A stretch of 64,000 nucleotides of DNA from Chlorokybus atmophyticus (taxonomy: Eukaryota; Plantae; Mesostigma and Chlorokybus algae). Numbering within the stretch: the first letter of the stretch is position 1; the number at the start of each line of letters is the position of its first letter. The DNA is taken from assembly GCA_009103225.1 (NCBI GenBank), contig RHPI01002069.1:1822846-1886845 (forward strand), read 5' to 3'. A program made the position numbers and the translations under genes. Under the pieces are notes generated by a model, which did no database searches, was not told the origin of the DNA, and worked only from the letters and a program-made list of their open reading frames with translations. Of this stretch, positions 11,647-64,000 are shown one piece after another.

Positions 11647-11741
11647 TTCGCCAGCTAAATGCGGCTTATGCGCTTAGATTTTTATATCACTGAATCTTAA
11701 CTTGGTAAGCAATGATCGCGACCACTTCAAACGGCGGCGAG

Positions 11742-12080
11742 TGTAACGGTGTGCTACCTCCATAGAGGTTCCCCGCCCTTATTTAGGATTAAATAAGGGT
11801 CCCAACGGGATTATACAGCCTATTAAGCCTTATTAGGGCCGTTAACCTAGTGTTAAGGCCCTAATGTAGTGTTACTTAACTATAACACTGATATCGACAT
11901 GAGACATGAGTCTCATGTGGATATCAGCTGCATGGCGGCGCTGCTAACGCAGCGGCCGCCATAGCCAGAGCATCTTTTGCTCTGGCAACTGCCCCGGCAG
12001 TGGCGGCGGCGGCGGCGAGGCTGGTGGTGGTGTTGGGGTAGGGGATTAAAGGGAGGAGGGGCACACCCTCTCTCCTGACA
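11742..12080 (+). repeat. 5' LTR (339 bp)
   Basis: TGTAACGG...CCTGACA, matching 18907-19245 except T/C at 11907 vs 19072. Confidence 0.97.
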
Positions 12081-12081
12081 T

Positions 12082-12093
12082 TGGTATCGGAGC
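12082..12093 (+). other. Primer-binding site complementary to the initiator Met tRNA 3' end
   Basis: TGGTATCGGAGC 1 nt after the LTR; canonical TGGTATCAGAGC with one G-U wobble. Confidence 0.9.
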
Positions 12094-12908
12094 ACGGGCG
12101 GCAAGGGGCCTGTGGGAGGGGCGGCGGCAGGCGGCAGGCACTGCAGGGGCGGCGGCAGGCACTGCGTCGGCAGGCGGCACTGCGGCGGCAAACTAGCGGT
12201 AGTTAAAAGTTTTGTTTGGTTTAACTGTTGTAGTTAAACGCTGCTGCTGGTGCCTAGCCTAGCCTAGCCTAGCCTATGCATGCCATGCCATGCCATGCCT
12301 AACTTGTCCTAGTTTAGTTGTTATTGTGTGAAGGGGGGCGGCCATCCAGGCCCCTCCCTGAAGCATTGCATCCAAGCACATAACATAGTAATCATATATT
12401 GTTTACTATAATCTTTGTGTGCTAACCACCACGTGGATTCGTGGTGGTGAAGGGCTTTTTATCTATTTTTTTGGATAAATTCCCTTGGGGGCAGTTCGGT
12501 GGCAACATCGACTGTCTCGGTACCGCCAGTCAGTGCGGTGAGGCCGCCAGAATTTTTCTGTGCGGTCGATATCAAACTCACAACTCACAACTTGTCGATA
12601 TCGGCCTGTAGGGCTGATTCAACGAGATTTTGGCACTTTGGGTGTCAATTGTGATTGTAAGTTGAGCTGGGTTGTACAAAGTGAAAACTTTGAGCAGCCA
12701 TAGCTCGTGAGCCGTCGCGTGCATTCGCGTGCGGTTTGTTGCACAGTGATTGTCTAGTTGAGAGGTGTGTGGAGAGCTCTTGTTTGGGCTGAATACTCCA
12801 CGTTTACCCCTCCAAACTTGACAGGACAAAATCACTAGTATTCGACGTTTTCATAGTGCACAACTTTCCGTGTTTGTGCACTATTTGAACAGTGTTATCC
12901 TTGGGCAG

Positions 12909-14375
12909 ATGTCTGACCAAGGAGAGGGAGGTGAAAAGTACTTCACCGTCCCTGATTCATCATCCTCATATGAGCCATCCAGTGATGACAAAGTGAGGGA
13001 CTCGGACACGAGTGAGAGCTATAAGCTCACTGACAGTGACAAGGAAGAAGAGGCTAAGCAAGATAGCGAAGCTTCCCCCGACCTGTCTACCCACAGTGAG
13101 CCAGCTGTAATGGACACACCGAGTGTCATTGGCGGAGCCATTGAAAAGTATGCGCGCGAGCGCAAGACTTTACTTGACGCCCACCCGCAGCTTCGTCAAG
13201 AAGTGTGGGATGCATGGGCGCAGAAGGTTCGTAATGGCTATGAAACAGATTTTGCCACTCTCCCTCGCACTAGTAAGGAGATGGTGATCCGCATGATTGA
13301 GCACGAGTTGACGAACAATGTTCCGCCACTCGTGCGTGGTGATCCAAAAGTGGCTGCTCTGATGGCCGTCTACGATAGGCCGCTCCCATACGAAGGGAAG
13401 CGGATGGCGTTTGAGGCCTTAGCCAACTTGATGGTTGAAACGCAGCAGCGTTGCAAGGATGTGTTCTGGTACTTGGGACCTAACTTGGAAAATAAGTTGG
13501 CTGGCCGAGTGAAGTTGGAGGCACGCCTCGATGCGATGCAATCTGAGTTGATGGCGCTGCGTCAGCAAGTAGCGGGTGCTGCTTCATCAGTTGGCGCATC
13601 AGTGGGGCTGCCGGTTACGGCATTGAACAAACCTGAAAAGTTCAAGCCTAACGGTAGTGTAAGTATCCATGATTGGGTGGTGACTGTCGAACATTACCTG
13701 ACAGCGCTAAAGCGCCCGGTGGGTGAGCACGTTGCCGTTGCTGAGTTGCTTATGCCATCTGATGCTCTCGCCGAGTGGGCACGACAAACAGAGCATGGCG
13801 CTGTGAAGACAGTACCAGCACTGTTTCAGTTTCTGATGGAGCGCTATGGTGGCATGGATCCGGCTACTCAGGCTCGTAACAAACTTAGCAAGTTGCGACA
13901 GAATGGTCGAGCAGCATCAGTGTATCTGCAGGAGTTCCAAGCATTAGTTGGTCGTGCCAATAGCGGCCTGATGCCTATGGACAAAGCTGAGCAGTTCGAG
14001 TTGTACAAGCGTGGCTTGGATGCGCGTGTTCGCGATCAGCTGCAGTACAACACTGCAACGGGGCTTCCTTGGGTTCCTGATGACTTGGCCAAGCTGCAAA
14101 AGCTAAGTGTTTACCTGTACAATGATGACACGGTCGTGCAGGAAAAGTCGAACGTGACAGCTATGGCCAAGCCGCAAGGGGGGGAAATAAAGCGCTATCC
14201 TCCGCCGAGTGTACATGTGGCGAAGAAAGCGAAGACATTCGCTCCTCGAATTGGTGGTACGTCTGCTGGTAATGCACCTACTGCAGCTCGCACCTGTTTC
14301 ATCTGCCATCAGCCGGGTCACGTTGCAAAGGCCTGTCCTACGAAGGCGAAGGGCAAAGCCAAGAAGGTTGAATAG
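12909..14375 (+). CDS. gag: Gag (acidic N-terminus, capsid-like region, CCHC zinc knuckle)
   Basis: ORF 12870-14375, first ATG at 12909. KPEKF..WVVTVEHYL retrotransposon gag motif and CFICHQPGHVAKAC (CX2CX4HX4C). Ends in TAG. Confidence 0.93.
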   Translation: MSDQGEGGEKYFTVPDSSSSYEPSSDDKVRDSDTSESYKLTDSDKEEEAKQDSEASPDLSTHSEPAVMDTPSVIGGAIEKYARERKTLLDAHPQLRQEVWDAWAQKVRNGYETDFATLPRTSKEMVIRMIEHELTNNVPPLVRGDPKVAALMAVYDRPLPYEGKRMAFEALANLMVETQQRCKDVFWYLGPNLENKLAGRVKLEARLDAMQSELMALRQQVAGAASSVGASVGLPVTALNKPEKFKPNGSVSIHDWVVTVEHYLTALKRPVGEHVAVAELLMPSDALAEWARQTEHGAVKTVPALFQFLMERYGGMDPATQARNKLSKLRQNGRAASVYLQEFQALVGRANSGLMPMDKAEQFELYKRGLDARVRDQLQYNTATGLPWVPDDLAKLQKLSVYLYNDDTVVQEKSNVTAMAKPQGGEIKRYPPPSVHVAKKAKTFAPRIGGTSAGNAPTAARTCFICHQPGHVAKACPTKAKGKAKKVE

Positions 14376-17300
14376 GATTACGCTGTGGCTGATGTAGCAA
14401 AGGTTGATAGTCAGTTGCTTGAGATACAAGCAGTTAACTGGTTTGATAATCTGTCTCAAATGCATGTAATGACGCATGCATGGCAAACACATCACAAGTT
14501 ACCACTGTTTGATGTTGCAACAGTGGAAGCAAATACTTGTGTACTGGTACATGTGAAATTTAACATGCTTACCGACGTGTTGCACACATTGAGTGAATTG
14601 CAATGTAAACACAGATCCCTGAGTGTGGTAGCAATGGTGCCAAAATATCATGGCCCATGGTTGAAGTATACTCGAGGGGGTACTGTTTTAAAACAATTCA
14701 CCAAGCGCGAGACTGGGACAATTCGATTATCAGCAATATTAATCAACCCCCGCATTAGTCACGGATTCTTGGCTACCTTTCAAGGACGAGTGGTACCTTT
14801 GTTGTGGACATTCAGTGGCACAATGCAAGGTGTGAATAGCTCGTTTTTGATTGACACTGGTGCGACACACAACTTCGTGGACGAGCAATGGGTTGCGCGC
14901 AATAAAATCATGCGCAAACCCTCAGCATTTTCGGCTGCCGGTGCTGGGGGTACATTGCCAGTGACGGGAGAAGTAAAATTGAAGGTTAAAATTGGTAATT
15001 ATTATGCCAATCTTGCCTTTATAGTAGTAGCAATCAACATATCTGGTGTTGATGTGGTACTAGGCCAAGAATGGCAAAATAATGTCACAATGACATTGGA
15101 TACGGGTGCACGCTTGTGCACAGTAAAGAAAGGCGGTAAGCGGATTACATTGTCTGTGAAAGGGTCGCATAGCTTGGAATTCAAGCAACCCGACCCTGCG
15201 TTACTCACGGCACTACAGGTGAAACGTGCGTTGCGCAAAAACACACCGGCTTTTCTGGTACATTTGTCTTCATCAGATGACATTGCGCCGGGTAGTACTG
15301 AAGGTGTGGCAGACCTCATTGAGGAATATCAAGATGTGTTCTCAGATGAGTTGCCGGGCTTGCCTCCTGACCGAGGTGTCGGACACACTATACCATTAAT
15401 TCCTGATAGTGATCCTCCTTTTCGGCCAATATATAGGCTAAGCCCTAGAGAAAGGGGGGAAATGGAAACACAAATCAAGGAGTTATTGGAAAAAGGATTG
15501 ATTGAACCAAGTTCTTCACCCTTTGGCGCACCCATCCTATTTGTGATGAAAAAGAATGGAAAATTGCGCATGTGTGTGGACTATCGTGCTTTAAACANAA
15601 TCACGGAGAAGTAAAATTGAAGGTTAAAATTGGTAATTATTATGCCAATCTTGCCTTTATAGTAGTAGCAATCAACATATCTGGTGTTGATGTGGTACTA
15701 GGCCAAGAATGGCAAAATAATGTCACAATGACATTGGATACGGGTGCACGCTTGTGCACAGTAAAGAAAGGCGGTAAGCGGATTACATTGTCTGTGAAAG
15801 GGTCGCATAGCTTGGAATTCAAGCAACCCGACCCTGCGTTACTCACGGCACTACAGGTGAAACGTGCGTTGCGCAAAAACACACCGGCTTTTCTGGTACA
15901 TTTGTCTTCATCAGATGACATTGCGCCGGGTAGTACTGAAGGTGTGGCAGACCTCATTGAGGAATATCAAGATGTGTTCTCAGATGAGTTGCCGGGCTTG
16001 CCTCCTGACCGAGGTGTCGGACACACTATACCATTAATTCCTGATAGTGATCCTCCTTTTCGGCCAATATATAGGCTAAGCCCTAGAGAAAGGGGGGAAA
16101 TGGAAACACAAATCAAGGAGTTATTGGAAAAAGGATTGATTGAACCAAGTTCTTCACCCTTTGGCGCACCCATCCTATTTGTGATGAAAAAGAATGGAAA
16201 ATTGCGCATGTGTGTGGACTATCGTGCTTTAAACAAAATCACGGTGAAAAATCGATACCCGTTGCCACGGATTGATGACGTGTTTGATAAACTATCAGGT
16301 AATGCATACTTCAGTACATTAGACCTGACAAGTGGATATCATCAGATCCGAATTCATTCCGCTGATGTCTATAAGACAGCTTTCAGAACACCTTCGGGCC
16401 ATTATCAATACAAAGTGCTACCCTTTGGATTGACGAATGCGCCTGCTGTGTTTCAGAAGGAAATGAATAAAATTTTCGGTAATATACTTGGCAAGTATGT
16501 TATGGTTTACTTGGATGACATTATTGTCTTTAGTAAAACCAAAGAGGAACATAAGCAACACTTAGAAGCGGTGTTTACTTTGTTGCGGAAGCATCATTTA
16601 TTTGCCAGCCTTGCAAAATGTGACTTTTGCAAATCGGAGTTACCATTCTTGGGACATGTTGTGAGTGGTGCGGGTGTAAAGCCTGACCCTCGCAAGGTGC
16701 AAGTTGTCAAGAATTGGCCTCAACCCAAAAATATTCATCAACTGAGATCATTTTTGGGATTGGCAAATTATTTTCGCAAATTTATGATGGGTTATTCTAC
16801 AGTTGTAATGCCCTTGACTAAATTGTTGCGAAAGGACGCGCCATTTTCTTGGACGTCAGACCAAGAAGCTGCTATGCAACAAGTGAAGTTAGCATTAACT
16901 TCAGCTCCAGTATTGGCATTGCCAAATTGGGATAAACATTTCACTGTGGTCAGTGATGCTTCCACCCTTGGGTGTGGTGCAGTACTACTGCAAGACGGCA
17001 GACCATGTGCTTATGAAAGTAGGAAGTTTATCCCAGCGGAGGTAAACTACACTACTACTGAGCAAGAGTTGCTTGGTGTCGTACATGCTCTCGAAACTTG
17101 GCGATGTTACTTAGAGGGAGTTCAGTTCACAGTGGTGACTGATCACAACCCATTAGTATACTTCTCAACGCAGCTGACCTTGTCACGTAGGCAAGCTCGC
17201 TGGAATGAGTTTCTGTCGCGATTTACTTTTGAATGGGTATATCGGCCTGGCAGAACTAATGTGGCAGATCCTTTAAGTCGCTGTCCGTCATTATTGGCAG

Positions 17301-18784
17301 TTATGCGTGCGCAATTGCTTGCGACGCAAGTTACATTGCCCGCTAATGATGCATTTGTGCAATCTGTTTTGCATGGGTATTCCTTAGACCCATGGTTCTC
17401 ACGGCAAGAGAATATACAACAGCTTGAAGCACGAGACAACTTGTATTATATGGGTGCTAGCTTGGTGATACCTGACCATGCTGGGCTACGCATGCAATGC
17501 ATAGCTGATGTACACGACCCACCGTACGCTGGGCACTTTGGAAATCGCAAGACTACCAAGGCAGCGCAACAGCTGTACTGGTGGCCATCGTTGCCTGTTG
17601 ACGTAAAGCGTTATGTTGACACCTGTGACAAATGTCAGCGTGACAAGCCGTTACGTCAGAAACCCGCTGGGTTGCTGCGACCTTTGCCTGTTCCTGATGG
17701 CAAATGGGAAAGTGTGAGTATGGACTTAATTACTGAGCTCCCAGAGACAGCATTAGGTCACACTGCGGTTGCAGTTTTCGTGGATCGTTTAACAAAAATG
17801 GTCCACATTGTCCCTTGTCGCACGGAGATAGGCTCCCGTGAGTTGGCGATGGTTTTTGTCGCGTCTGTGTTCAAGTTGCATGGCTTGCCCCGCAACTTCG
17901 TGTCAGATCGCGATCCGCGATTTGTGGCTCAGTTTTGGAAGTCGCTATGCAGCTTCTTACACATTCAGCAGAACATGAGCACTGCTTACCATCCACAGAC
18001 GGATGGTCAAACAGAACGCGCCAATCAAGTGATTGAGGAAACCATCCGGCATTATGTGAGCCCGAATCAGAGTGATTGGGATATTTATCTCCCAATGGCT
18101 GAATTTGCGATCAATAATGCATGGCAAGAGAGTGTGCAGGAGACTCCGTTCTTCTTGAATTACGGAGTGCATCCACTAAGTCCTGCGAACATTAAGTTGC
18201 CCGCTACTGACGTGACTCGCGTACCTGCAGCGCGCGAGATGGCTTCGGCCATGCAGGATAGGTTAGCGTTGGCAAAGCACTGTCTGCGCGCAGCGCAAGA
18301 TAGACAAAAAGCCCAAGCTGATGCGCATCGTAGAGAGGCCAGCTACGATGTGGGCTGTTCAGTACTTTTGAGTACCAAAAATATATCCATCAAGGGAGTG
18401 GGTACCCGTAAATTTTTCCCTCGTTGGATAGGCCCTTTCAAAGTGATTGATCGGGTCGGCACTCACGCGTATCGTTTGGATTTACCAATGTCGATACGAA
18501 TTCACAATGTGTTTCATGTGAGTGTACTGAAACCGTACCGATCAGACGGTCGGGTTCAACCCCCTCCACCCCCAGTCGCAGTGGATGGTGACAATACATT
18601 TGAGTATGAGGTGGAAGCAATCCTAAGTCACCGTAAGCCTCGACGCGGACGCGCGCCGTCCTACTTGGTGAAATGGAAAGGGTATGGTGTTGAACACAAT
18701 ACATGGGAGCCCGAAAGGAATCTTACCAACTGCCAAGAGGTTCTTCGGGGGTACTGGAGTACTGTGTCCACACGCGAACGGTAA
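14376..18784 (+). CDS. pol: Pol: extra N-terminal segment, aspartic protease, RT, RNase H, integrase, chromodomain; interrupted in this assembly by a 638-bp tandem duplication
   Basis: LIDTGA (PR), RMCVDYRALN and YLDDII (RT), SDASTLGCGAVL / TDHNPL (RH), H-H-C-C zinc finger and DDE-region motifs (IN), YEVEAIL...YLVKWKGY...TWEPE (chromodomain, about 18604-18770). Removing the duplication leaves 3771 nt = 1257 codons, open from 14376. Confidence 0.95.
14967..16242 (+). repeat. 638-bp tandem duplication inside pol (14967-15604 repeated as 15605-16242), probable assembly artefact
   Basis: Identical ORF translations offset by 638 nt in the track; an N at 15598 just before the junction; causes a frameshift. 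Confidence 0.9.
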
Positions 18785-18893
18785 AAGGGTGCTGGCAGAC
18801 ATCTTTACCGCTTCGGCCCTGGTTCTCTCACTGCTTTCGTTTTGTGACTCGTGATGGGGCTTTGCTAACCCTTCAATGAGGACATTGAAACCT

Positions 18894-18906
18894 AAGTGGG
18901 GGGGAA
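18894..18906 (+). other. Polypurine tract
   Basis: AAGTGGGGGGGAA directly upstream of the 3' LTR. Confidence 0.88.
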
Positions 18907-19245
18907 TGTAACGGTGTGCTACCTCCATAGAGGTTCCCCGCCCTTATTTAGGATTAAATAAGGGTCCCAACGGGATTATACAGCCTATTAAGCCTTATTA
19001 GGGCCGTTAACCTAGTGTTAAGGCCCTAATGTAGTGTTACTTAACTATAACACTGATATCGACATGAGACACGAGTCTCATGTGGATATCAGCTGCATGG
19101 CGGCGCTGCTAACGCAGCGGCCGCCATAGCCAGAGCATCTTTTGCTCTGGCAACTGCCCCGGCAGTGGCGGCGGCGGCGGCGAGGCTGGTGGTGGTGTTG
19201 GGGTAGGGGATTAAAGGGAGGAGGGGCACACCCTCTCTCCTGACA
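18907..19245 (+). repeat. 3' LTR (339 bp)
   Basis: Copy of 11742-12080 followed by the TSD GCGAG. Confidence 0.97.
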
Positions 19246-19733: not shown

Positions 19734-19750
19734 GGGGGGGGGGGGGGGGN
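19734..19750. other. G16 run ending in N; probable assembly junction or low-quality site
   Basis: Homopolymer immediately followed by an ambiguous base. Confidence 0.6.
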
Positions 19751-20259
19751 GCTTAGGTGGGTTTGAAAACGGGTTAAACCAAATGCAGTACCAGGCGTAC
19801 AAAGTATGCAACGAGGGAATGTGTATGAAGATATCCAAGCGGACTCAAGTCTATGAAATGTTGTACCATGTGCCATTTACATGCAAGTTTTCAAGTTCAT
19901 GAGATGGCAAGCGCCACAAAAGTATAGCCATAGCCACACCCACATAGCCCACACACCCCACCTCATGATCACCTCAATTGGAATGCCCCCGTGAGCAAGT
20001 TGCTGTGCGTGCAACTTCAGGCTATGGCCACCTGCCTTTATGCTTGAACATGTAATTTCCCGTGTCCTTGTTGTCGATCTCTGAATGTATGGTTAAACCC
20101 ACAACCGCTTTCAATCATCAAGCATTTTGGTCCATTCAATGTCAAGAAGCATTGACAATCACACTGCGCTTTACTGCGAAAGCCAATGTCAAAGAGCACG
20201 CATAGCCGTAGCAATAGAATGGACTGAGTTTGTAATACAGCTCTGCACAAGCCAGCCAC

Positions 20260-22223
20260 TTATTGATCAGGCATGCCAACCTTCAAATGTCCATAGAATG
20301 TTTGCAAGCTGTGGTCATCACCAACAAAACGCCAATGCCATGGCTCATACATGATGCCATATTCGTTGTCTTTGGGGAAGGACATCTCAAAGTGGAACCT
20401 GTAGTGAGACACTTGGTTAGTAAACACCATTCGCCCCGAGCTGTGGCAGATGGAATGGACAGCCTAAGCGTTCAGCACCGCACCTGGCAGCATTCTTTGC
20501 AAGCCACTTGTAAGCACCCGTTTCATCAAAACCTGTACGGCAAGCGAGAGTAGCTGAAGACGAGTTCTGATACTGCATTAAGCCTGTCGCACAACATGCA
20601 CTCACTCCACTCCAGATGTGTGTCGGGCCACCGGCCATCTCCAATATCAAGTACATAGCCCGTGTGATGTTCGCTGTAGCCTGGTGGCGCTGACACCTGA
20701 ACAGCGACAATTCGTTGTGAGTGAATGCGCCCACCTGCTATCTACCAGTGGCATGTTTGGTGTTCACACAAACCGCAAACAGAACTGCACCCCTGCTATT
20801 GCGCTGCTTACTACACTGATGCACACTGGACAACAGCGCTACCTTTGCTCGCTCGTGAGCCAACTGCTTCCTTTCTGCCTTAACGTCAAAGAATACACTC
20901 TGCTGATCCTCAATGGAGCGATATCTGAGCAGACGCAATGACAGTATGATTCAAGGCAACTGCAACTCTGCATGCAAACGCAGCCTCACAGTTACGCATC
21001 AATCGATACCCTGAAAGAGGGACAAGTCTCACTCCCGCCCAATGAGCCTCTTCCTGCATCTGGAAAAACGCCTCTGCTGCAGCTCTCCTCAGCATCACAC
21101 TGCGGTCGGTACTATGGTTACACATGCAACTCATTGGCACAGGACAACTTGCAACATGCAGCTGTGGCAGACCTGCGGTCCGCTAGGACAGGTATGAGGT
21201 CTTCGGCAGGCGCTTCTTCTCGTCGTATATGACCAAGCATCTAAAGCACAAAGGTCAACTTCTTACGCTCGTCTGTCTACAGACCACTTTGAACCCTTAA
21301 GAGGAATCTGCTAACATTGCACCTGTGTTGGTGCGCCGGTTGTGATGATGTCCGCAATGTTCTGTGCATACGCTGTGGCTACCGCGACAGTTTCTTTGAC
21401 ACCTGCAGCATGTTGAGATAAGCCGTCGTGTTTGCGAAGAAAGCTGTACACATGCTTGTTTGCGGCTACTGCAGGCAATGTCAGCCCACAAACAGACAAA
21501 GCTACTCACTCTCCCCACACCTCCATTCGTATGATAGATGTGCCAAGACCCTAAGCACACGGCACCACCGCCAAGTGTCCCGCGAATTGCAAGCGACAGC
21601 GCAGAGGACCTTTGGTGCTTTGACTGAGGCTTTGATGGTGATGAGGAGGAGGAGGAGGAAGCCTGCGAACTGCCTCTTCGCACACGTACCGCCTCGCGCA
21701 CTTCCTGTATACAGATTTTTTCAAAAGGGAAAAGAGGTGTTTGGTGCAAGACAGTATAACTTGCAGTTACACGTGTGTGGCATGAACGGCTCACATCTAG
21801 TCAGCCGCGTAAGTGTACTTGCTGCAAGGTTGGCAGTATAGTCGTAATACAATGGTACCGCATTGTCAACTACAACAAGAAAAGTTGCCTATAAAAACAA
21901 GTTAACTAATCTTCAAATTCTATTGAATGATGTCGCATGGCAGGGTTGGGACAAGTACTCTCATCGGAAATCAGTCAACAAGATCAGCAAGGTCTATGCT
22001 AACCCAACGCAAGCACCTCAAGCGGGTAGTCCTCGACGTCACCATCATCGCCAGCGGAGGCGGCGGCCCGAGGTGGCTCGGGAAGCAGCCTCCTCCTACT
22101 ACTTTTACAGTTCAAACTCCTCCTGGCGCCCCTTGGCAGCGGCTCCTCCGCTCCACCTGCCTCCCCCAACAGCCACCCCCACCCCGCCCCCGCCCCCGCC
22201 CCCGCCGCCCTTCCCGCCCACAT
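20260..22223 (-). CDS. vanY: D-alanyl-D-alanine carboxypeptidase, VanY/peptidase M15B family, cyanobacterial type; multi-exon; putative transit peptide and membrane anchor; start approximate
   Basis: Spliced: MLGHIRREEAPAEDL | VMLRRAAAEAFFQMQEEAHWAGVRLVPLSGYR | SIEDQQSVFFDVKAERKQLAHERAK | VSAPPGYSEHHTGYVLDIGDG | FDETGAYKWLAKNAAR | FHFEMSFPKDNEYGIMYEPWHWRFVGD. SxHxxGxxxD and EPWH zinc-binding motifs are intact. Stop TAA at 20260-20262. Confidence 0.92.
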
Positions 22224-23095
22224 CGCTTGAATGCAAGTTAGTTTACTGCTTGTTCACGACTCCACATTGAATGACTAGTGAACCAATCAGTGAATCACTT
22301 GAACCCGGTGTGCTGTTTCATCAAACTCGAGACAAAACCCATACTGCCTGCTGGTCCCTTTTATAGACACGTGTGGAGAAGGCGACAGCTGGCAGGGGAG
22401 AGGTGGTTGTTGTTGGTGTCGCTGGCGGTGGCGGCGGCGGCGGAGGCGGCGGCGGCGGAAGGGGGAGGGGTGGGAGTAATTGGTGTGAAGCCTTAAACGT
22501 GAGGCGTGCACTACGGTAAGGAAGGACGAGGCTGCTGTTGGATGATGCTTGCTGCCTTGCTTGATAGCTGCATACCCAACTTGATCAGCTCTTGTGCTCT
22601 ATTACAAGTCAGTCAGCGCAGGTACAAACACATTCAAAGCAATCATGTTATGTAAGCAATGTGAAGCTCGTTGATGGTTGTGCTTGGAATTGCGGAGTTC
22701 AGCGGACCTTGTAAGTGACCAATGCTAGCAATGTCCAGCAATGGTCTGGCATTGCACCAACACTGTTGCCTGAAGCGCACATATAACAGCTCTGGTAAGA
22801 ATACCTTGAGTGCATATTTGCTGCAGCCATTATGGCGCAAGTGTGTGCTTCATGCTGTCACGCATGCTGGACGCTTGTGCGAGAGCACGCGTCTGTGTGC
22901 GTGTGTGTACATTCTTACTACAGTTCAAGGCACAGTGCTGATCGATGCTTGTAGACTCATAGACTGTGTGTACAGGCTCATGATTACACCCTGTCAAGCA
23001 CAGATGATCGCATGAAGGACAAGCAGCCGGTCCGCTCTAGCCCCTGGACGTAACACTACTGCCGCTCTCCAAGCAGACACAGAAGCCATCACACA

Positions 23096-26000
23096 ATGGG
23101 CGGTAATGTCCCTGTGCGAGTTGCCGTGCGCGTGCGGCCCCCCCTTACCGATATCCACCTGCACACCAACATCAATAACAACGGTGACAGCAACAGTGCC
23201 AGCAGCGCACTGGCGGTGGAAGTGAATGGAGAAGCGCGCACAGTGATTGTGAGTTGCACTGCAATATAACCACACAAGGAGGCAAGATGGAAGGTGGGTT
23301 CAAAGCTAACATGTTGATATCAGGTCCACGCTCCATCCAATGCCACGGACTCCGCCAGCATCAACACCGGTGGCAGCAAGCGGCCCGTAGCTACCGGCCG
23401 CGCGTGGCGCTTCGACGCGTGCTTTGGGGGCGAGGCCTCGCAGGTATGTTATGGTTGTATGTATGTGCGTGCGTGCGTGCGTGCTTGTGTGCGCGCTTGT
23501 ATAGAAATGCAGAAACATTTTGTGGGTTATGTAGGAAGAGGTGTTCAGGGAGAGCGGGGTTCCGGAGCTTGTGGACGCTGCACTGGATGGCTATTCTGCC
23601 ACGGTCTTCGCATTTGGGCAGGTGAGGAGAGAGACAAGGTCAATCTGCCAGCTCAGCTTATACGCATGACTCCGTTAAGTGTGGTGATAAGTTTGTGCGC
23701 TGCTTGCATGACACTCAAGCGCGCACATGCTCAGTGTTAGAGCAACAGTTTGCCGGGAAATGCCACTGTTTGTCCATCTAATATGTGCAGCTGTTCTGTA
23801 CACACATTTGGCATGCACGCGCGCGCACGCGCGACATTGCAACTTCCATCAGTCAGTTATGAACACCAGTTTGGTTGCAACATGCCTCATATCCAACCTG
23901 TATTTATTGAAACGTTACCGAGTGGGATTCGTACCCAACACTCACTTTTCATCGCAGACCGGCTCGGGCAAGACTCACACGTTGACGGGACAGTCCGGAT
24001 CTATCTTCTCCACCAACGGCGGGAGCGATCCCAACGACGGCGTGGTGGCGCGCGCCCTTGCCCAAGCCTACGCCACCATCGAGCAGCGCCGAGAGCACAC
24101 GTCGTACGCTGTCAAAGTCTCTGTGGCTGAGATATACAATGAGAAGGTGTGTGCGTTATGCACGATACACATTGCAACCTGTCATGTATGCATTGCACGT
24201 AGCATGTGCATACTGACGGCATGTCTTGTGTGCTGTTGATTGTTACTTCAAGTTTCTTGCGTATAGATTACAGACTTGTTGACCTCTAAAGTGGGACCTC
24301 CTCTCCCGATCCGAAGCGATCGCACGCGTGGGTTTTACGTGAAAGGGCTCACGTGCACGACGGCGCCAGACTTGCACACAGCCATAGCCCTCATAAATAC
24401 TGGTATGCGCTTCAGGATACACACATGTCTTACACACAGACACATACCCACATTGACACACGTATGACGCTTGCAGCGCTCGCTAGGAGACGAGTCTCCG
24501 CCCACAGAATGAACCGCTCCTCCTCCCGCAGCCACTGCATAATGACAGTGTACTTCGACTCCACTCCTGCAAACACAACAAGCGGGCCTGCCCTTGACAA
24601 CAGCGATGACGCATCACAGCTGCCGAGGCAAGCTACACAATAATATGATACTGTTGCCGCTACGCTTAAACACAATGTGTCAAAGGGGTTCTTTGTTTTC
24701 TTCACAGGTTTGGGAAGGCGTGGTTTGTGGACTTGGCGGGGTCAGAGCGGCTGCGTGACACGGGCAGTGCGGGGACTCTCGCTGTGCGGGAGGCTGGCAA
24801 GATCAACCGCAGCCTGTTTTCTCTCAGCAAGGTGCGCATGGGTTTGCACCTGTGGTTGTGTCTTGTTTGACCAACACGCACATGCGCGCACGCACGTGCC
24901 ACATGTATGCTCGCGAAGCTGAAGCATGCGCAAACCACGCTTGTTTCAGGTTATCACGGCGTTGAGTGAGAAAGGAAACGCGTTTGTCCCATACCGAGAA
25001 AGCAAGCTGACACAGGTTGGTGGTAGAAAAGTGCTGACTTGCAGATGCAACAAGTGTGTTGATGAATGCAAACATAACGAGCAGCTCTTGTCTCTCAGTT
25101 GCTGATTGACTCGCTGCACGGGACGGGACGGGCCCTTCTGCTGGCGTGCTGTTCACCACTGGTGGAGCATGCTGAGGAGACCGCACACACGCTCCATTTT
25201 GCCAGGTGGAGAAGAGTGTGTGGTGTGCTTGGGTGGGCGTGCGCTTGTGTGCACCGTGTGTGTCTGTGTCTGTGTCTGTGTCTGTGTCTGTGTCTGTGTC
25301 TGCATGCCAGGTTCAAAAGATAGTCAACATCCTGTTGCAGAGTTCTCATGCCTCCAACTGTCGTGCAGTCTCGCCATGCGTGTGGCGAGCGCTCCTGTCG
25401 TGTCCCTGGACCCGCATAATGCTTTGGTACAGAGGCTCAAATCCACAATAGCAGATCTCAAAGAGGTGTGTCCTTACGTCCTTGCTTGATCTCATACTTT
25501 ACTGTTGAAATCTTTTCCCAATCACAGTCCTTCACTCCGCGCATCCTTGCTGCAATGTGCAGGAAAACAAGTCTCTAAGCGCGAAGCTCGTGCGAATGAG
25601 TGTTCACAGCGCCGAGACCGCGTCATCAAATAACGCGCTGATGGACGGCGATGAGAGCGTCCATACCAGCCATAAGCACAACAACAACAGTTTTGTCGTC
25701 AACCATGCGGATAGCAGCATCAACGACAGCCGCAGCGACGTGACAGCCACGAGCCCGCTCTCGCGCCCGACCGTGACAAAACACGAGGCACTCAGGCGTC
25801 TCAACAACAGGCGCCCGGACAGCAAGAAGAAGAAGCACAAGAGGATGCCAAGGTGATTGTTACGTACTGGTATGTTTCGGAGGTATGTATTGCACTCGTC
25901 ATTTGATTGTGTGTACACCATTCATGACCCATCTGACGTGTTACTTAGGCCAAGGAGCGAAGGCGAGAGCGGAAAGCTGTTAAACATGTGGAGTCTGTTC

Positions 26001-28740: not shown

Positions 28741-30613
<1,873 letters not shown>

Positions 30614-32208: not shown

Positions 32209-33174
<966 letters not shown>

Positions 33175-63894: not shown

Positions 63895-64000
<106 letters not shown>

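Follow-up and report, generated by a model that had tools for sequence, protein, structure and literature searches.

Ten core enzymes of the peptidoglycan pathway are reported for all streptophyte algae (PMC7455551), vanY is one of the peptidoglycan genes named in the genome paper of Cyanophora (PMC6704402), and for the part of MltB and VanY in moss chloroplast division a paper of 2026 (PMC13075712) refers to Utsunomiya et al. 2021 (Plant Mol Biol 107:405). Cyanobacteria carry related membrane-anchored M15 proteins of 240-290 amino acids, encoded without introns or a targeting extension. Here we describe a gene of the same family in Chlorokybus atmophyticus, on the minus strand of a 64,000-nucleotide stretch of contig RHPI01002069.1 (the window). 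A preliminary description, made from the DNA letters alone, had read positions 20260-22223 as a spliced VanY carboxypeptidase gene of endosymbiotic origin, and our analysis supports that interpretation. The locus is probably the Chlorokybus nuclear orthologue of green-plant plastid VanY, an M15B peptidase from the cyanobacterial plastid ancestor for which a role at the plastid envelope is proposed.

The VanY protein of the moss Physcomitrium patens (XP_024376143.1, P0200) falls in the same streptophyte clade as the Chlorokybus protein (support 99/93), is 58% identical to it over 205 residues and has identical catalytic residues. On the full-length model both proteins are laid out as leader, hydrophobic segment, linker and M15B domain, but about 160 residues precede the hydrophobic segment in the moss compared to about 100 in Chlorokybus, the leaders are unrelated in sequence, and the segment itself is less hydrophobic in Chlorokybus (Kyte-Doolittle 1.21 against 2.03). 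The nearest relative in the 63-row tree described below is Klebsormidium nitens GAQ79155.1, annotated as 'Peptidase M15B and M15C' (P0205). All eight introns match between the two genes, although the Klebsormidium protein is longer (442 amino acids, with a 200-residue leader) and its introns measure 170-807 nucleotides (nt) against 73-312 nt. The membrane-anchored M15 proteins of cyanobacteria (Gloeomargarita sp. SKYG116, P0014; Scytonema millei, P0010) are 60-64% identical to the Chlorokybus protein over the domain and share with it a DDIPEAxR-like motif, a membrane segment and a linker ahead of that domain. Among solved structures, LdcB of Bacillus and Streptococcus (4MPH, 4JID, 4OX3, 4OX5) gives the best matches and has the same zinc-site motifs, but at an identity of only about 29-32% substrate specificity cannot be transferred. 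The vancomycin-resistance enzymes VanY and VanXY (5HNM, 4MUR, 4F78) have the Pfam family PF02557, the fold and the catalytic motifs in common with it, yet their models (NF000380, NF000472, NF000473) score the Chlorokybus protein at 44-69 bits, far under cut-offs of 250-500. The gene lies outside any resistance operon and nothing suggests a role in glycopeptide resistance.

To build the gene model, every frame-keeping GT/GC...AG pair was enumerated with cyanobacterial homologues as guides; in the searches, the look-ups and the folding, the protein was represented by exon pieces and by the identical public 172-residue protein P0123 introduced below. The coding sequence alternates over three minus-strand frames (translation of 20200-22300) and runs from an ATG at 22223 to a stop codon at 20262-20260, exactly the span first proposed, with nine exons, eight introns and a product of 329 amino acids. 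The preliminary count of about seven introns was therefore one short; all eight are GT-AG and span 73-312 nt. The features, all on the minus strand, are as follows.

22017..22223, minus strand: exon 1, 207 nt, residues 1-69; Met start, Ala/Gly/Arg-rich leader, acidic DDGDVEDYPLE.
21705..22016, minus strand: intron 1, 312 nt, GT-AG, phase 0; position conserved.
21521..21704, minus strand: exon 2, 184 nt; EVREAVRVRR motif, Ser-rich linker, hydrophobic segment.
21549..21605, minus strand: hydrophobic segment SALSLAIRGTLGGGAVCLG, residues 103-121, weak; candidate membrane anchor.
21403..21520, minus strand: intron 2, 118 nt, GT-AG, phase 1; donor 21520, acceptor 21403 preferred over 21469.
21323..21402, minus strand: exon 3, 80 nt; linker GVKETVAVATAYAQNIADIITTGAPTQ.
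21241..21322, minus strand: intron 3, 82 nt, GT-AG, phase 0; directly before the conserved (L/M)LGH.
21173..21240, minus strand: exon 4, 68 nt; start of the catalytic domain, MLGHIRREEAPAEDLIPVLAD; 100% identical to P0123.
21100..21172, minus strand: intron 4, 73 nt, GT-AG, phase 2.
21010..21099, minus strand: exon 5, 90 nt; ends with the Ser-Gly of the SGYR motif; Pfam VanY positions 3-45.
20925..21009, minus strand: intron 5, 85 nt, GT-AG, phase 2.
20843..20924, minus strand: exon 6, 82 nt; YRSIEDQQSVFFDVKAERKQLAHERAK, holding the invariant Arg of SGYR (Arg55 of P0123).
20697..20842, minus strand: intron 6, 146 nt, GT-AG, phase 0.
20606..20696, minus strand: exon 7, 91 nt; VSAPPGYSEHHTGYVLDIGDGRWPDTHLEW; Pfam VanY positions 54-85, E 1e-7.
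20646..20675, minus strand: SEHHTGYVLD, His-x6-Asp zinc-ligand motif; aligns with SEHQTGLTMD of BaLdcB 4MPH.
20533..20605, minus strand: intron 7, 73 nt, GT-AG, phase 1.
20484..20532, minus strand: exon 8, 49 nt; FDETGAYKWLAKNAA.
20399..20483, minus strand: intron 8, 85 nt, GT-AG, phase 2.
20260..20398, minus strand: exon 9, 139 nt including the stop codon; RFHFEMSFPKDNEYGIMYEPWHWRFVGDDHSLQTFYGHLKVGMPDQ; Pfam VanY positions 101-132, E 1.4e-8.
20335..20346, minus strand: EPWH, Glu-x-x-His, the catalytic Glu and the His that is the third zinc ligand; aligns with EPWH of 4MPH.

The sequence elements named in the preliminary description were all recovered in this model. The M15B motifs SGYRS, SAPPGYSEHHTGYVLDIGD and YEPWHWRFVG lie across junction 5, in exon 7 and in exon 9, respectively, and the upstream exons supply the leader ending in PPRAAASAG, the acidic stretch DDGDVEDYPLE/EVREAVR (the slash marking junction 1) and the hydrophobic stretch ALSLAIRGTLGGGAVCLGSW. 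The ATG of exon 1 is the first of its open frame, with an in-frame stop just upstream, and the phase-0 donor at 22016 occupies the same alignment column as Klebsormidium intron 1 and lies at most one column from that of Sphagnum. The first ~25 codons of exon 1 (AGAGAGAGWGW..., 22150-22215, minus strand) derive from a GC-rich GGGGCG-like hexamer repeat, so that the true start codon and the first leader residues are the least certain part of the model. Intron 2 has several frame-keeping options, among which donor 21509 shows the best donor consensus. Model A, which joined this donor (GTGAGT) to acceptor 21455 in phase 0 and gave 350 amino acids, was nevertheless dropped in favour of donor 21520 because the conserved intron 2 is of phase 1: in the window and in Klebsormidium a conserved Trp opens a run of eight residues, after which the intron interrupts a Gly codon in phase 1.

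Evidence for the full-length model came from the genes of other streptophytes. We threaded the annotated proteins of Klebsormidium, Closterium and Sphagnum exactly through their own genomic loci and found catalytic-domain exons of 68, 90, 82, 91 and 49 nt in each, identical to exons 4-8 of the window (four species). A phase-0 intron stands directly before the conserved LLGH in all three, as intron 3 does in Chlorokybus. On the protein alignment, every one of the eight window introns (8/8) has a counterpart of the same phase at the same place in Klebsormidium and Sphagnum, intron 1 (phase 0) falling in an identical or adjacent column across the three. These shared positions and phases support the upstream leader and the weak hydrophobic segment of the full-length model. 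The public Chlorokybus atmophyticus protein from JGI/EukProt (Chrsp17S00179, P0123, 172 amino acids), which was annotated independently, is 100% identical to spliced exons 4-9 and thus confirms junctions 4-8; it corresponds to residues 179-350 of the initial 350-residue model and to the final 172 residues of the 329-residue protein. The match also marks the window as nuclear DNA of an alga, Chlorokybus, and not of a human. What is new here is the corrected nine-exon gene model, the full conservation of intron positions across streptophytes, the broad spread of this VanY subtype among algae with retained plastid peptidoglycan genes, and the caution that 'D,D' is a family label.

The family assignment rests on several matches. 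When nine stop-free pieces from the minus strand were scanned against Pfam, three of them gave colinear matches to VanY (PF02557), covering profile positions 3-45, 54-85 and 101-132 (E = 2.5e-4, 1e-7 and 1.4e-8), two scoring above the 25-bit gathering threshold on their own (32.2 and 35.0 bits); P0123 also carries a precomputed PF02557 match. The catalytic residues of P0123 (Arg55, H90, D97, E145 and H148) are invariant in 55 homologues, and the Arg of SGYR, the His-x6-Asp pair and the Glu-x-x-His pair are all conserved in the alignment to BaLdcB 4MPH. We take these residues to be the substrate-binding Arg, the zinc ligands and the catalytic Glu, as in the established LdcB and VanXY structures. 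Sequence matches in the PDB came in the order LdcB (4MPH/4JID, E = 2.5e-21; 4OX3, 9e-18), VanXYg and VanXYc, VanYB, and pneumococcal LdcB. An AlphaFold model of the domain (predicted local distance difference test score, pLDDT, 88.8; predicted template modelling score, pTM, 0.84) was searched with Foldseek, and the top matches were BaLdcB, BsLdcB, VanYB and VanXYc at template modelling (TM) scores of 0.66-0.73, followed by phage endolysins (Ply500), VanX and hedgehog N-domains. The protein is thus predicted to have the LAS-type (hedgehog / DD-peptidase) fold. The NCBIfam models of the resistance VanY and VanXY proteins (NF000380, NF000472, NF000473, NF000149 and NF000086) scored 22-69 bits against cut-offs of 250-500, and the LdcB model (NF041194) 55 bits against 275, scores that place the protein among generic M15B peptidases, outside both the resistance VanY and the curated LdcB families.

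Neither sequence nor fold discriminates between D,D and L,D specificity. The same gene, with the same orthology and location, might encode an LdcB-like L,D-carboxypeptidase that takes the terminal D-Ala off tetrapeptides to leave tripeptides, and that would act after a D,D-carboxypeptidase or a transpeptidase rather than on pentapeptides. We regard this as possible, though unlikely. It would fit the three best sequence matches among solved structures, all of them LdcB from B. anthracis or B. subtilis (4MPH/4JID and 4OX3), and the best structural match, BaLdcB, which is described as a 'VanY-like L,D-carboxypeptidase' (TM 0.72); the LdcB score in NCBIfam also lies in a range similar to that of the VanY models. 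However, VanXY (69 bits) and VanY-A (62 bits) scored slightly above LdcB in that comparison, VanYB and VanXYc equal BaLdcB in TM-score (0.68-0.73), and both databases and the moss literature name the orthologue a DD-carboxypeptidase, although probably by homology only. A broader version holds that green-plant plastid 'VanY' as such is an LdcB-like L,D-carboxypeptidase, leaving tripeptide stems in the wall, or else that the marginal anchor of the Chlorokybus protein reflects a soluble enzyme in the envelope space of the streptophytes that branched off first; we consider this doubtful. If true, the L,D or the soluble reading would change the picture of plastid wall processing, which is based on a homology-derived 'DD-carboxypeptidase' label.

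The best bacterial matches of exon 9 were to Chroococcidiopsis (78-81% over 36 residues), then to Leptolyngbyaceae, Trichodesmium, Pseudanabaenaceae and Gloeomargarita, and over the whole catalytic domain the best cyanobacterial proteins reached 60-64% identity. A cyanobacteria-dominated profile returned only cyanobacterial proteins among the 120 matches listed. Further profile searches were re-weighted with non-cyanobacterial scaffolds and the window pieces, and then made with a streptophyte profile, which yielded the orthologues of Sphagnum, Physcomitrium, Ceratodon, Closterium and Klebsormidium. Up to this point all eukaryotic matches were from streptophytes, which bears on the endosymbiotic interpretation. 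An exhaustive protein search with the streptophyte domain profile, from which the best 148 new representatives were placed in a tree, added Cyanophora paradoxa, Mesotaenium, a second Closterium, Pycnococcus, Pseudoscourfieldia, Prasinococcus, Pyramimonas, Chloropicon primus, the trebouxiophyte [Myrmecia] bisecta and several marine clusters.

In a tree inferred under LG+C20+F+G4 with posterior mean site frequencies (PMSF; 63 rows, 249 columns), the streptophytes were monophyletic (99/93; 97/98 in an earlier tree) and the window protein was sister to Klebsormidium (98/85). Eukaryotes, Gloeomargarita and crown cyanobacteria formed one clade (95/93; 98/97 in the earlier tree) with proteobacterial VanY outside it, while the crown cyanobacteria made up a clade of their own without any eukaryotes (98/96). 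The other groups inside the 95/93 clade of the 63-row tree were a chlorophyte/prasinophyte and marine group (90/86), Cyanophora with Prasinococcus (81/72) and a group from bacterial metagenome-assembled genomes (MAGs; 100/100). Three arrangements were put to approximately unbiased (AU) tests and none was rejected: the 29 eukaryotic and marine rows united in a single clade (p = 0.39), a grouping of the streptophytes with Gloeomargarita (p = 0.32), and eukaryotes outside all cyanobacteria (p = 0.40). Judged by these comparisons, the gene is of cyanobacterial type, as the preliminary description had read it. Its placement is what would be expected of a gene from a Gloeomargarita-like plastid ancestor. 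The proposal of an endosymbiotic derivation fits the cyanobacterial-type clade (95/93 to 98/97), while a single endosymbiotic transfer is compatible with the unresolved backbone of the tree and not demonstrated by it.

The same polytomy would also suit a later horizontal transfer into green algae or streptophytes, either from a Gloeomargarita-like cyanobacterium or from non-cyanobacterial bacteria with the same subtype. A clade of about 15 proteins from bacterial MAGs (Pseudomonadota, Pseudobacteriovorax) came out as the sister group of the streptophytes in the first careful tree, with a support of only 17/47, and the placement of eukaryotes outside all cyanobacteria passed the AU test at the p-value given above. 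These observations are outweighed, in our opinion, by the occurrence of the subtype in a glaucophyte, Prasinococcus, prasinophytes, chlorophytes and streptophytes alike, by the equally acceptable single eukaryotic clade (p-AU 0.39), by the branching of all these lineages beside Gloeomargarita and outside the crown cyanobacteria (98/96), as endosymbiotic transfer predicts, and by eight introns that were fixed before the deepest streptophyte split sampled. Later transfer thus appears improbable.

Several of the relatives deserve mention in their own right. About 20 clusters of 200-235-residue proteins (P0121-P0143; L007:2527-3153, L009:1775-2434) group together at 100/100 within the VanY clade of cyanobacterial/algal type and apart from other proteobacterial VanY; the two named source loci belong to bacterial MAGs (Pseudomonadota, Pseudobacteriovorax), and horizontal transfer to or from phototrophs may explain them. 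The same VanY subtype is represented in [Myrmecia] bisecta, Chloropicon primus, Pycnococcus/Pseudoscourfieldia, Pyramimonas, Prasinococcus and Cyanophora (P0357, P0361, P0332, P0310, P0479, P0296). Its presence in the core chlorophyte [Myrmecia] bisecta stands out, since the loss of peptidoglycan genes, to a differing extent, is reported for core Chlorophyta (PMC7455551). The Closterium sp. NIES-54 protein P0291 (CAI7765015.1) has 771 amino acids and sits in the 90% cluster of the 341-residue Closterium NIES-53 orthologue, being either a fusion or a merged gene model. Scytonematopsis contorta encodes a divergent paralogue (L019:2380-3186; ...YEPWHWAWHG, PGHSQHHTG). Its branch splits off below the cyanobacterial/algal clade as a whole, so that cyanobacteria have at least two VanY subtypes.

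The region ahead of the catalytic domain was compared in the same way. The sequence at junction 1, DYPLE/EVREAVRVRR, aligns with the DDIPEAxR motif that precedes the membrane segment from cyanobacteria to streptophytes. All eukaryotic orthologues have an extension of 190-280 amino acids with a hydrophobic segment 25-44 residues before LGH, and the window segment keeps this relative place, 37 residues before LGH. In the moss the full-length protein is encoded uninterrupted on an RNA-seq contig, and the same holds for two algal proteins. The domain order of the full-length model is a eukaryote-specific leader, the motif, a weak hydrophobic segment, a linker and a complete catalytic domain; the short motif and the weak segment are homologous to the cyanobacterial N-terminal anchor region, so that, after a leader of its own, the protein repeats the cyanobacterial order of anchor, linker and domain.

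The public protein P0123 has none of these upstream elements. It begins at the Met of exon 4, and its ATG sits exactly on the conserved splice acceptor of intron 3, the AG of which belongs to an in-frame TAG immediately before that ATG. The residue following this acceptor is Met in Chlorokybus and Leu in Klebsormidium, Closterium and Sphagnum (LLGH). A start codon placed on a conserved internal acceptor indicates that the public model is truncated at its N-terminus, the gene predictor having mistaken an exon boundary for a start codon. An exact-protein look-up of P0123 for the position of its gene returned no record. Were the 172-residue model right, the enzyme would be leaderless, anchorless and cytosolic, either a relic or acting on soluble D-Ala peptides, and the upstream open frames would be untranslated or part of something else. 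It is the only annotated Chlorokybus model and starts at the exon 4 Met, no transcript evidence was found for exons 1-3, and the hydrophobic segment that it omits is weak. Yet its start coincides with an acceptor that is conserved in three other streptophytes, two introns further upstream match Klebsormidium and Sphagnum in position and phase, the sequence at junction 1 matches a motif kept from cyanobacteria to streptophytes, and every other eukaryotic orthologue has a long extension. We therefore consider the short protein very improbable as the true gene product; targeting predictions made from it would wrongly call the VanY protein cytosolic.

Bacterial contamination or chance open frames, for which only the closeness to cyanobacterial proteins (60-64% identity in the domain) could speak, are already refuted by the data. 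Eight GT-AG introns, from which the preliminary description too had argued against contamination, split the coding sequence over three frames, their positions recur in three other streptophyte genomes, and eukaryotic genes and a retrotransposon flank the VanY gene on the contig.

Some observations do weigh against the reading of the locus as an envelope-anchored plastid VanY. No transcript or protein evidence from Chlorokybus was found for exons 1-3, and the sole public model does without them. The acceptor of intron 2 at 21403, which gives 329 amino acids, competes with a less likely one at 21469 that would give 351, and a Gly/Ala repeat, arising from the GC-rich hexamer, makes up the first 25 residues of the leader. 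The best 19-residue Kyte-Doolittle value of the hydrophobic segment (1.21, with an internal Arg) lies below the usual threshold for a membrane helix and is the weakest of all orthologues (1.35-2.23; other eukaryotes, 1.72-2.23). None of the curated NCBIfam models (VanXY, VanY-A, VanY-B, VanXY-G, LdcB) reached its cut-off, and the nearest solved structures are L,D- and not D,D-carboxypeptidases, for which reasons 'D,D' should be read here as a family label. The backbone of the 63-row tree is a polytomy from which the streptophytes, the Gloeomargarita lineage and other groups radiate. Finally, the equation of P0200 with the published PpVanY is drawn from database names.

Regarding function, the 90% cluster of the Physcomitrium orthologue holds BAE45862.1 (UniProt Q3LHI1), named 'DD-carboxypeptidase', and the orthologues of Klebsormidium, Chloropicon and Pycnococcus are already annotated as M15 peptidases or D-Ala-D-Ala carboxypeptidases. 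The moss study of Utsunomiya et al. 2021 reportedly included chloroplast localisation and knock-outs. Recent reviews and papers on plastid peptidoglycan made no mention of a carboxypeptidase, and the literature searched held nothing usable on the biochemical role of the cyanobacterial homologue. We propose that the leader would import the VanY protein into the plastid and that the hydrophobic segment might hold it at the inner envelope membrane, so that the catalytic domain would face the intermembrane space, the presumed site of the thin plastid peptidoglycan; this orientation would mirror the periplasmic one in cyanobacteria. There the enzyme would remove the C-terminal D-Ala from stem peptides, from the pentapeptide if the D,D family label applies or from the tetrapeptide if the nearest structures (L,D) are the better guide, and D-Ala removal could limit or tune cross-linking as the plastid wall grows and divides. 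Had the Mur pathway been lacking, the preliminary description would have favoured a relic or a new function; ten core enzymes are reported for streptophyte algae (PMC7455551).

The surroundings of the gene were also inspected. A Ty3/gypsy-type chromodomain retrotransposon with long terminal repeats (LTRs) occupies 11733-19197 on the plus strand, with gag, protease, reverse transcriptase-RNaseH, integrase and chromodomain in three adjoining open reading frames (12870-18784). Its LTRs start at 11733 and 18898, are at least 300 nt long and 99-100% identical, and the element, which looks young, contains an exact 300-nt internal duplicate at 14967 and 15605; about 1.4 kb separate the start of its downstream LTR from the stop codon of the VanY gene. 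On the other side, a kinesin gene on the plus strand (23097-24236) lies head-to-head with the VanY gene, with its start MGGNVPVRVAVRVRPP near 23097 and a motor-domain exon at 23727-24236. The upstream region of about 870 bp common to both genes includes a (GGC)n run at ~22420-22460. Further along, a polyubiquitin gene (28744-30258, minus strand) encodes seven ubiquitin units in 6.6 tandem copies of a 228-bp unit (90% identity), and a (GA) microsatellite of about 480 units at 32213-33173 explains why GC and AT skew are extreme in that 2-kb bin. A (CT)51 run closes the window (63899-64000), and a run of about 15 G including an N (19735-19751) probably reflects an artefact of the assembly or of the homopolymer. 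Scans of the window for Rfam families and tRNAs gave no matches.

Together, these results pair the Chlorokybus gene with a moss gene for which a link to chloroplast division is on record, a sound but largely ordinary finding that overturns no current view. The exon-intron structure was already fixed before the split of Chlorokybus, Klebsormidium, zygnematophytes and mosses, and with Chlorokybus the deepest-branching streptophyte lineage joins the algae and mosses in which a cyanobacterial enzyme for trimming peptidoglycan has been retained together with the Mur pathway. Given its wide occurrence in algae, this VanY subtype could serve as an accessory marker for plastid peptidoglycan.

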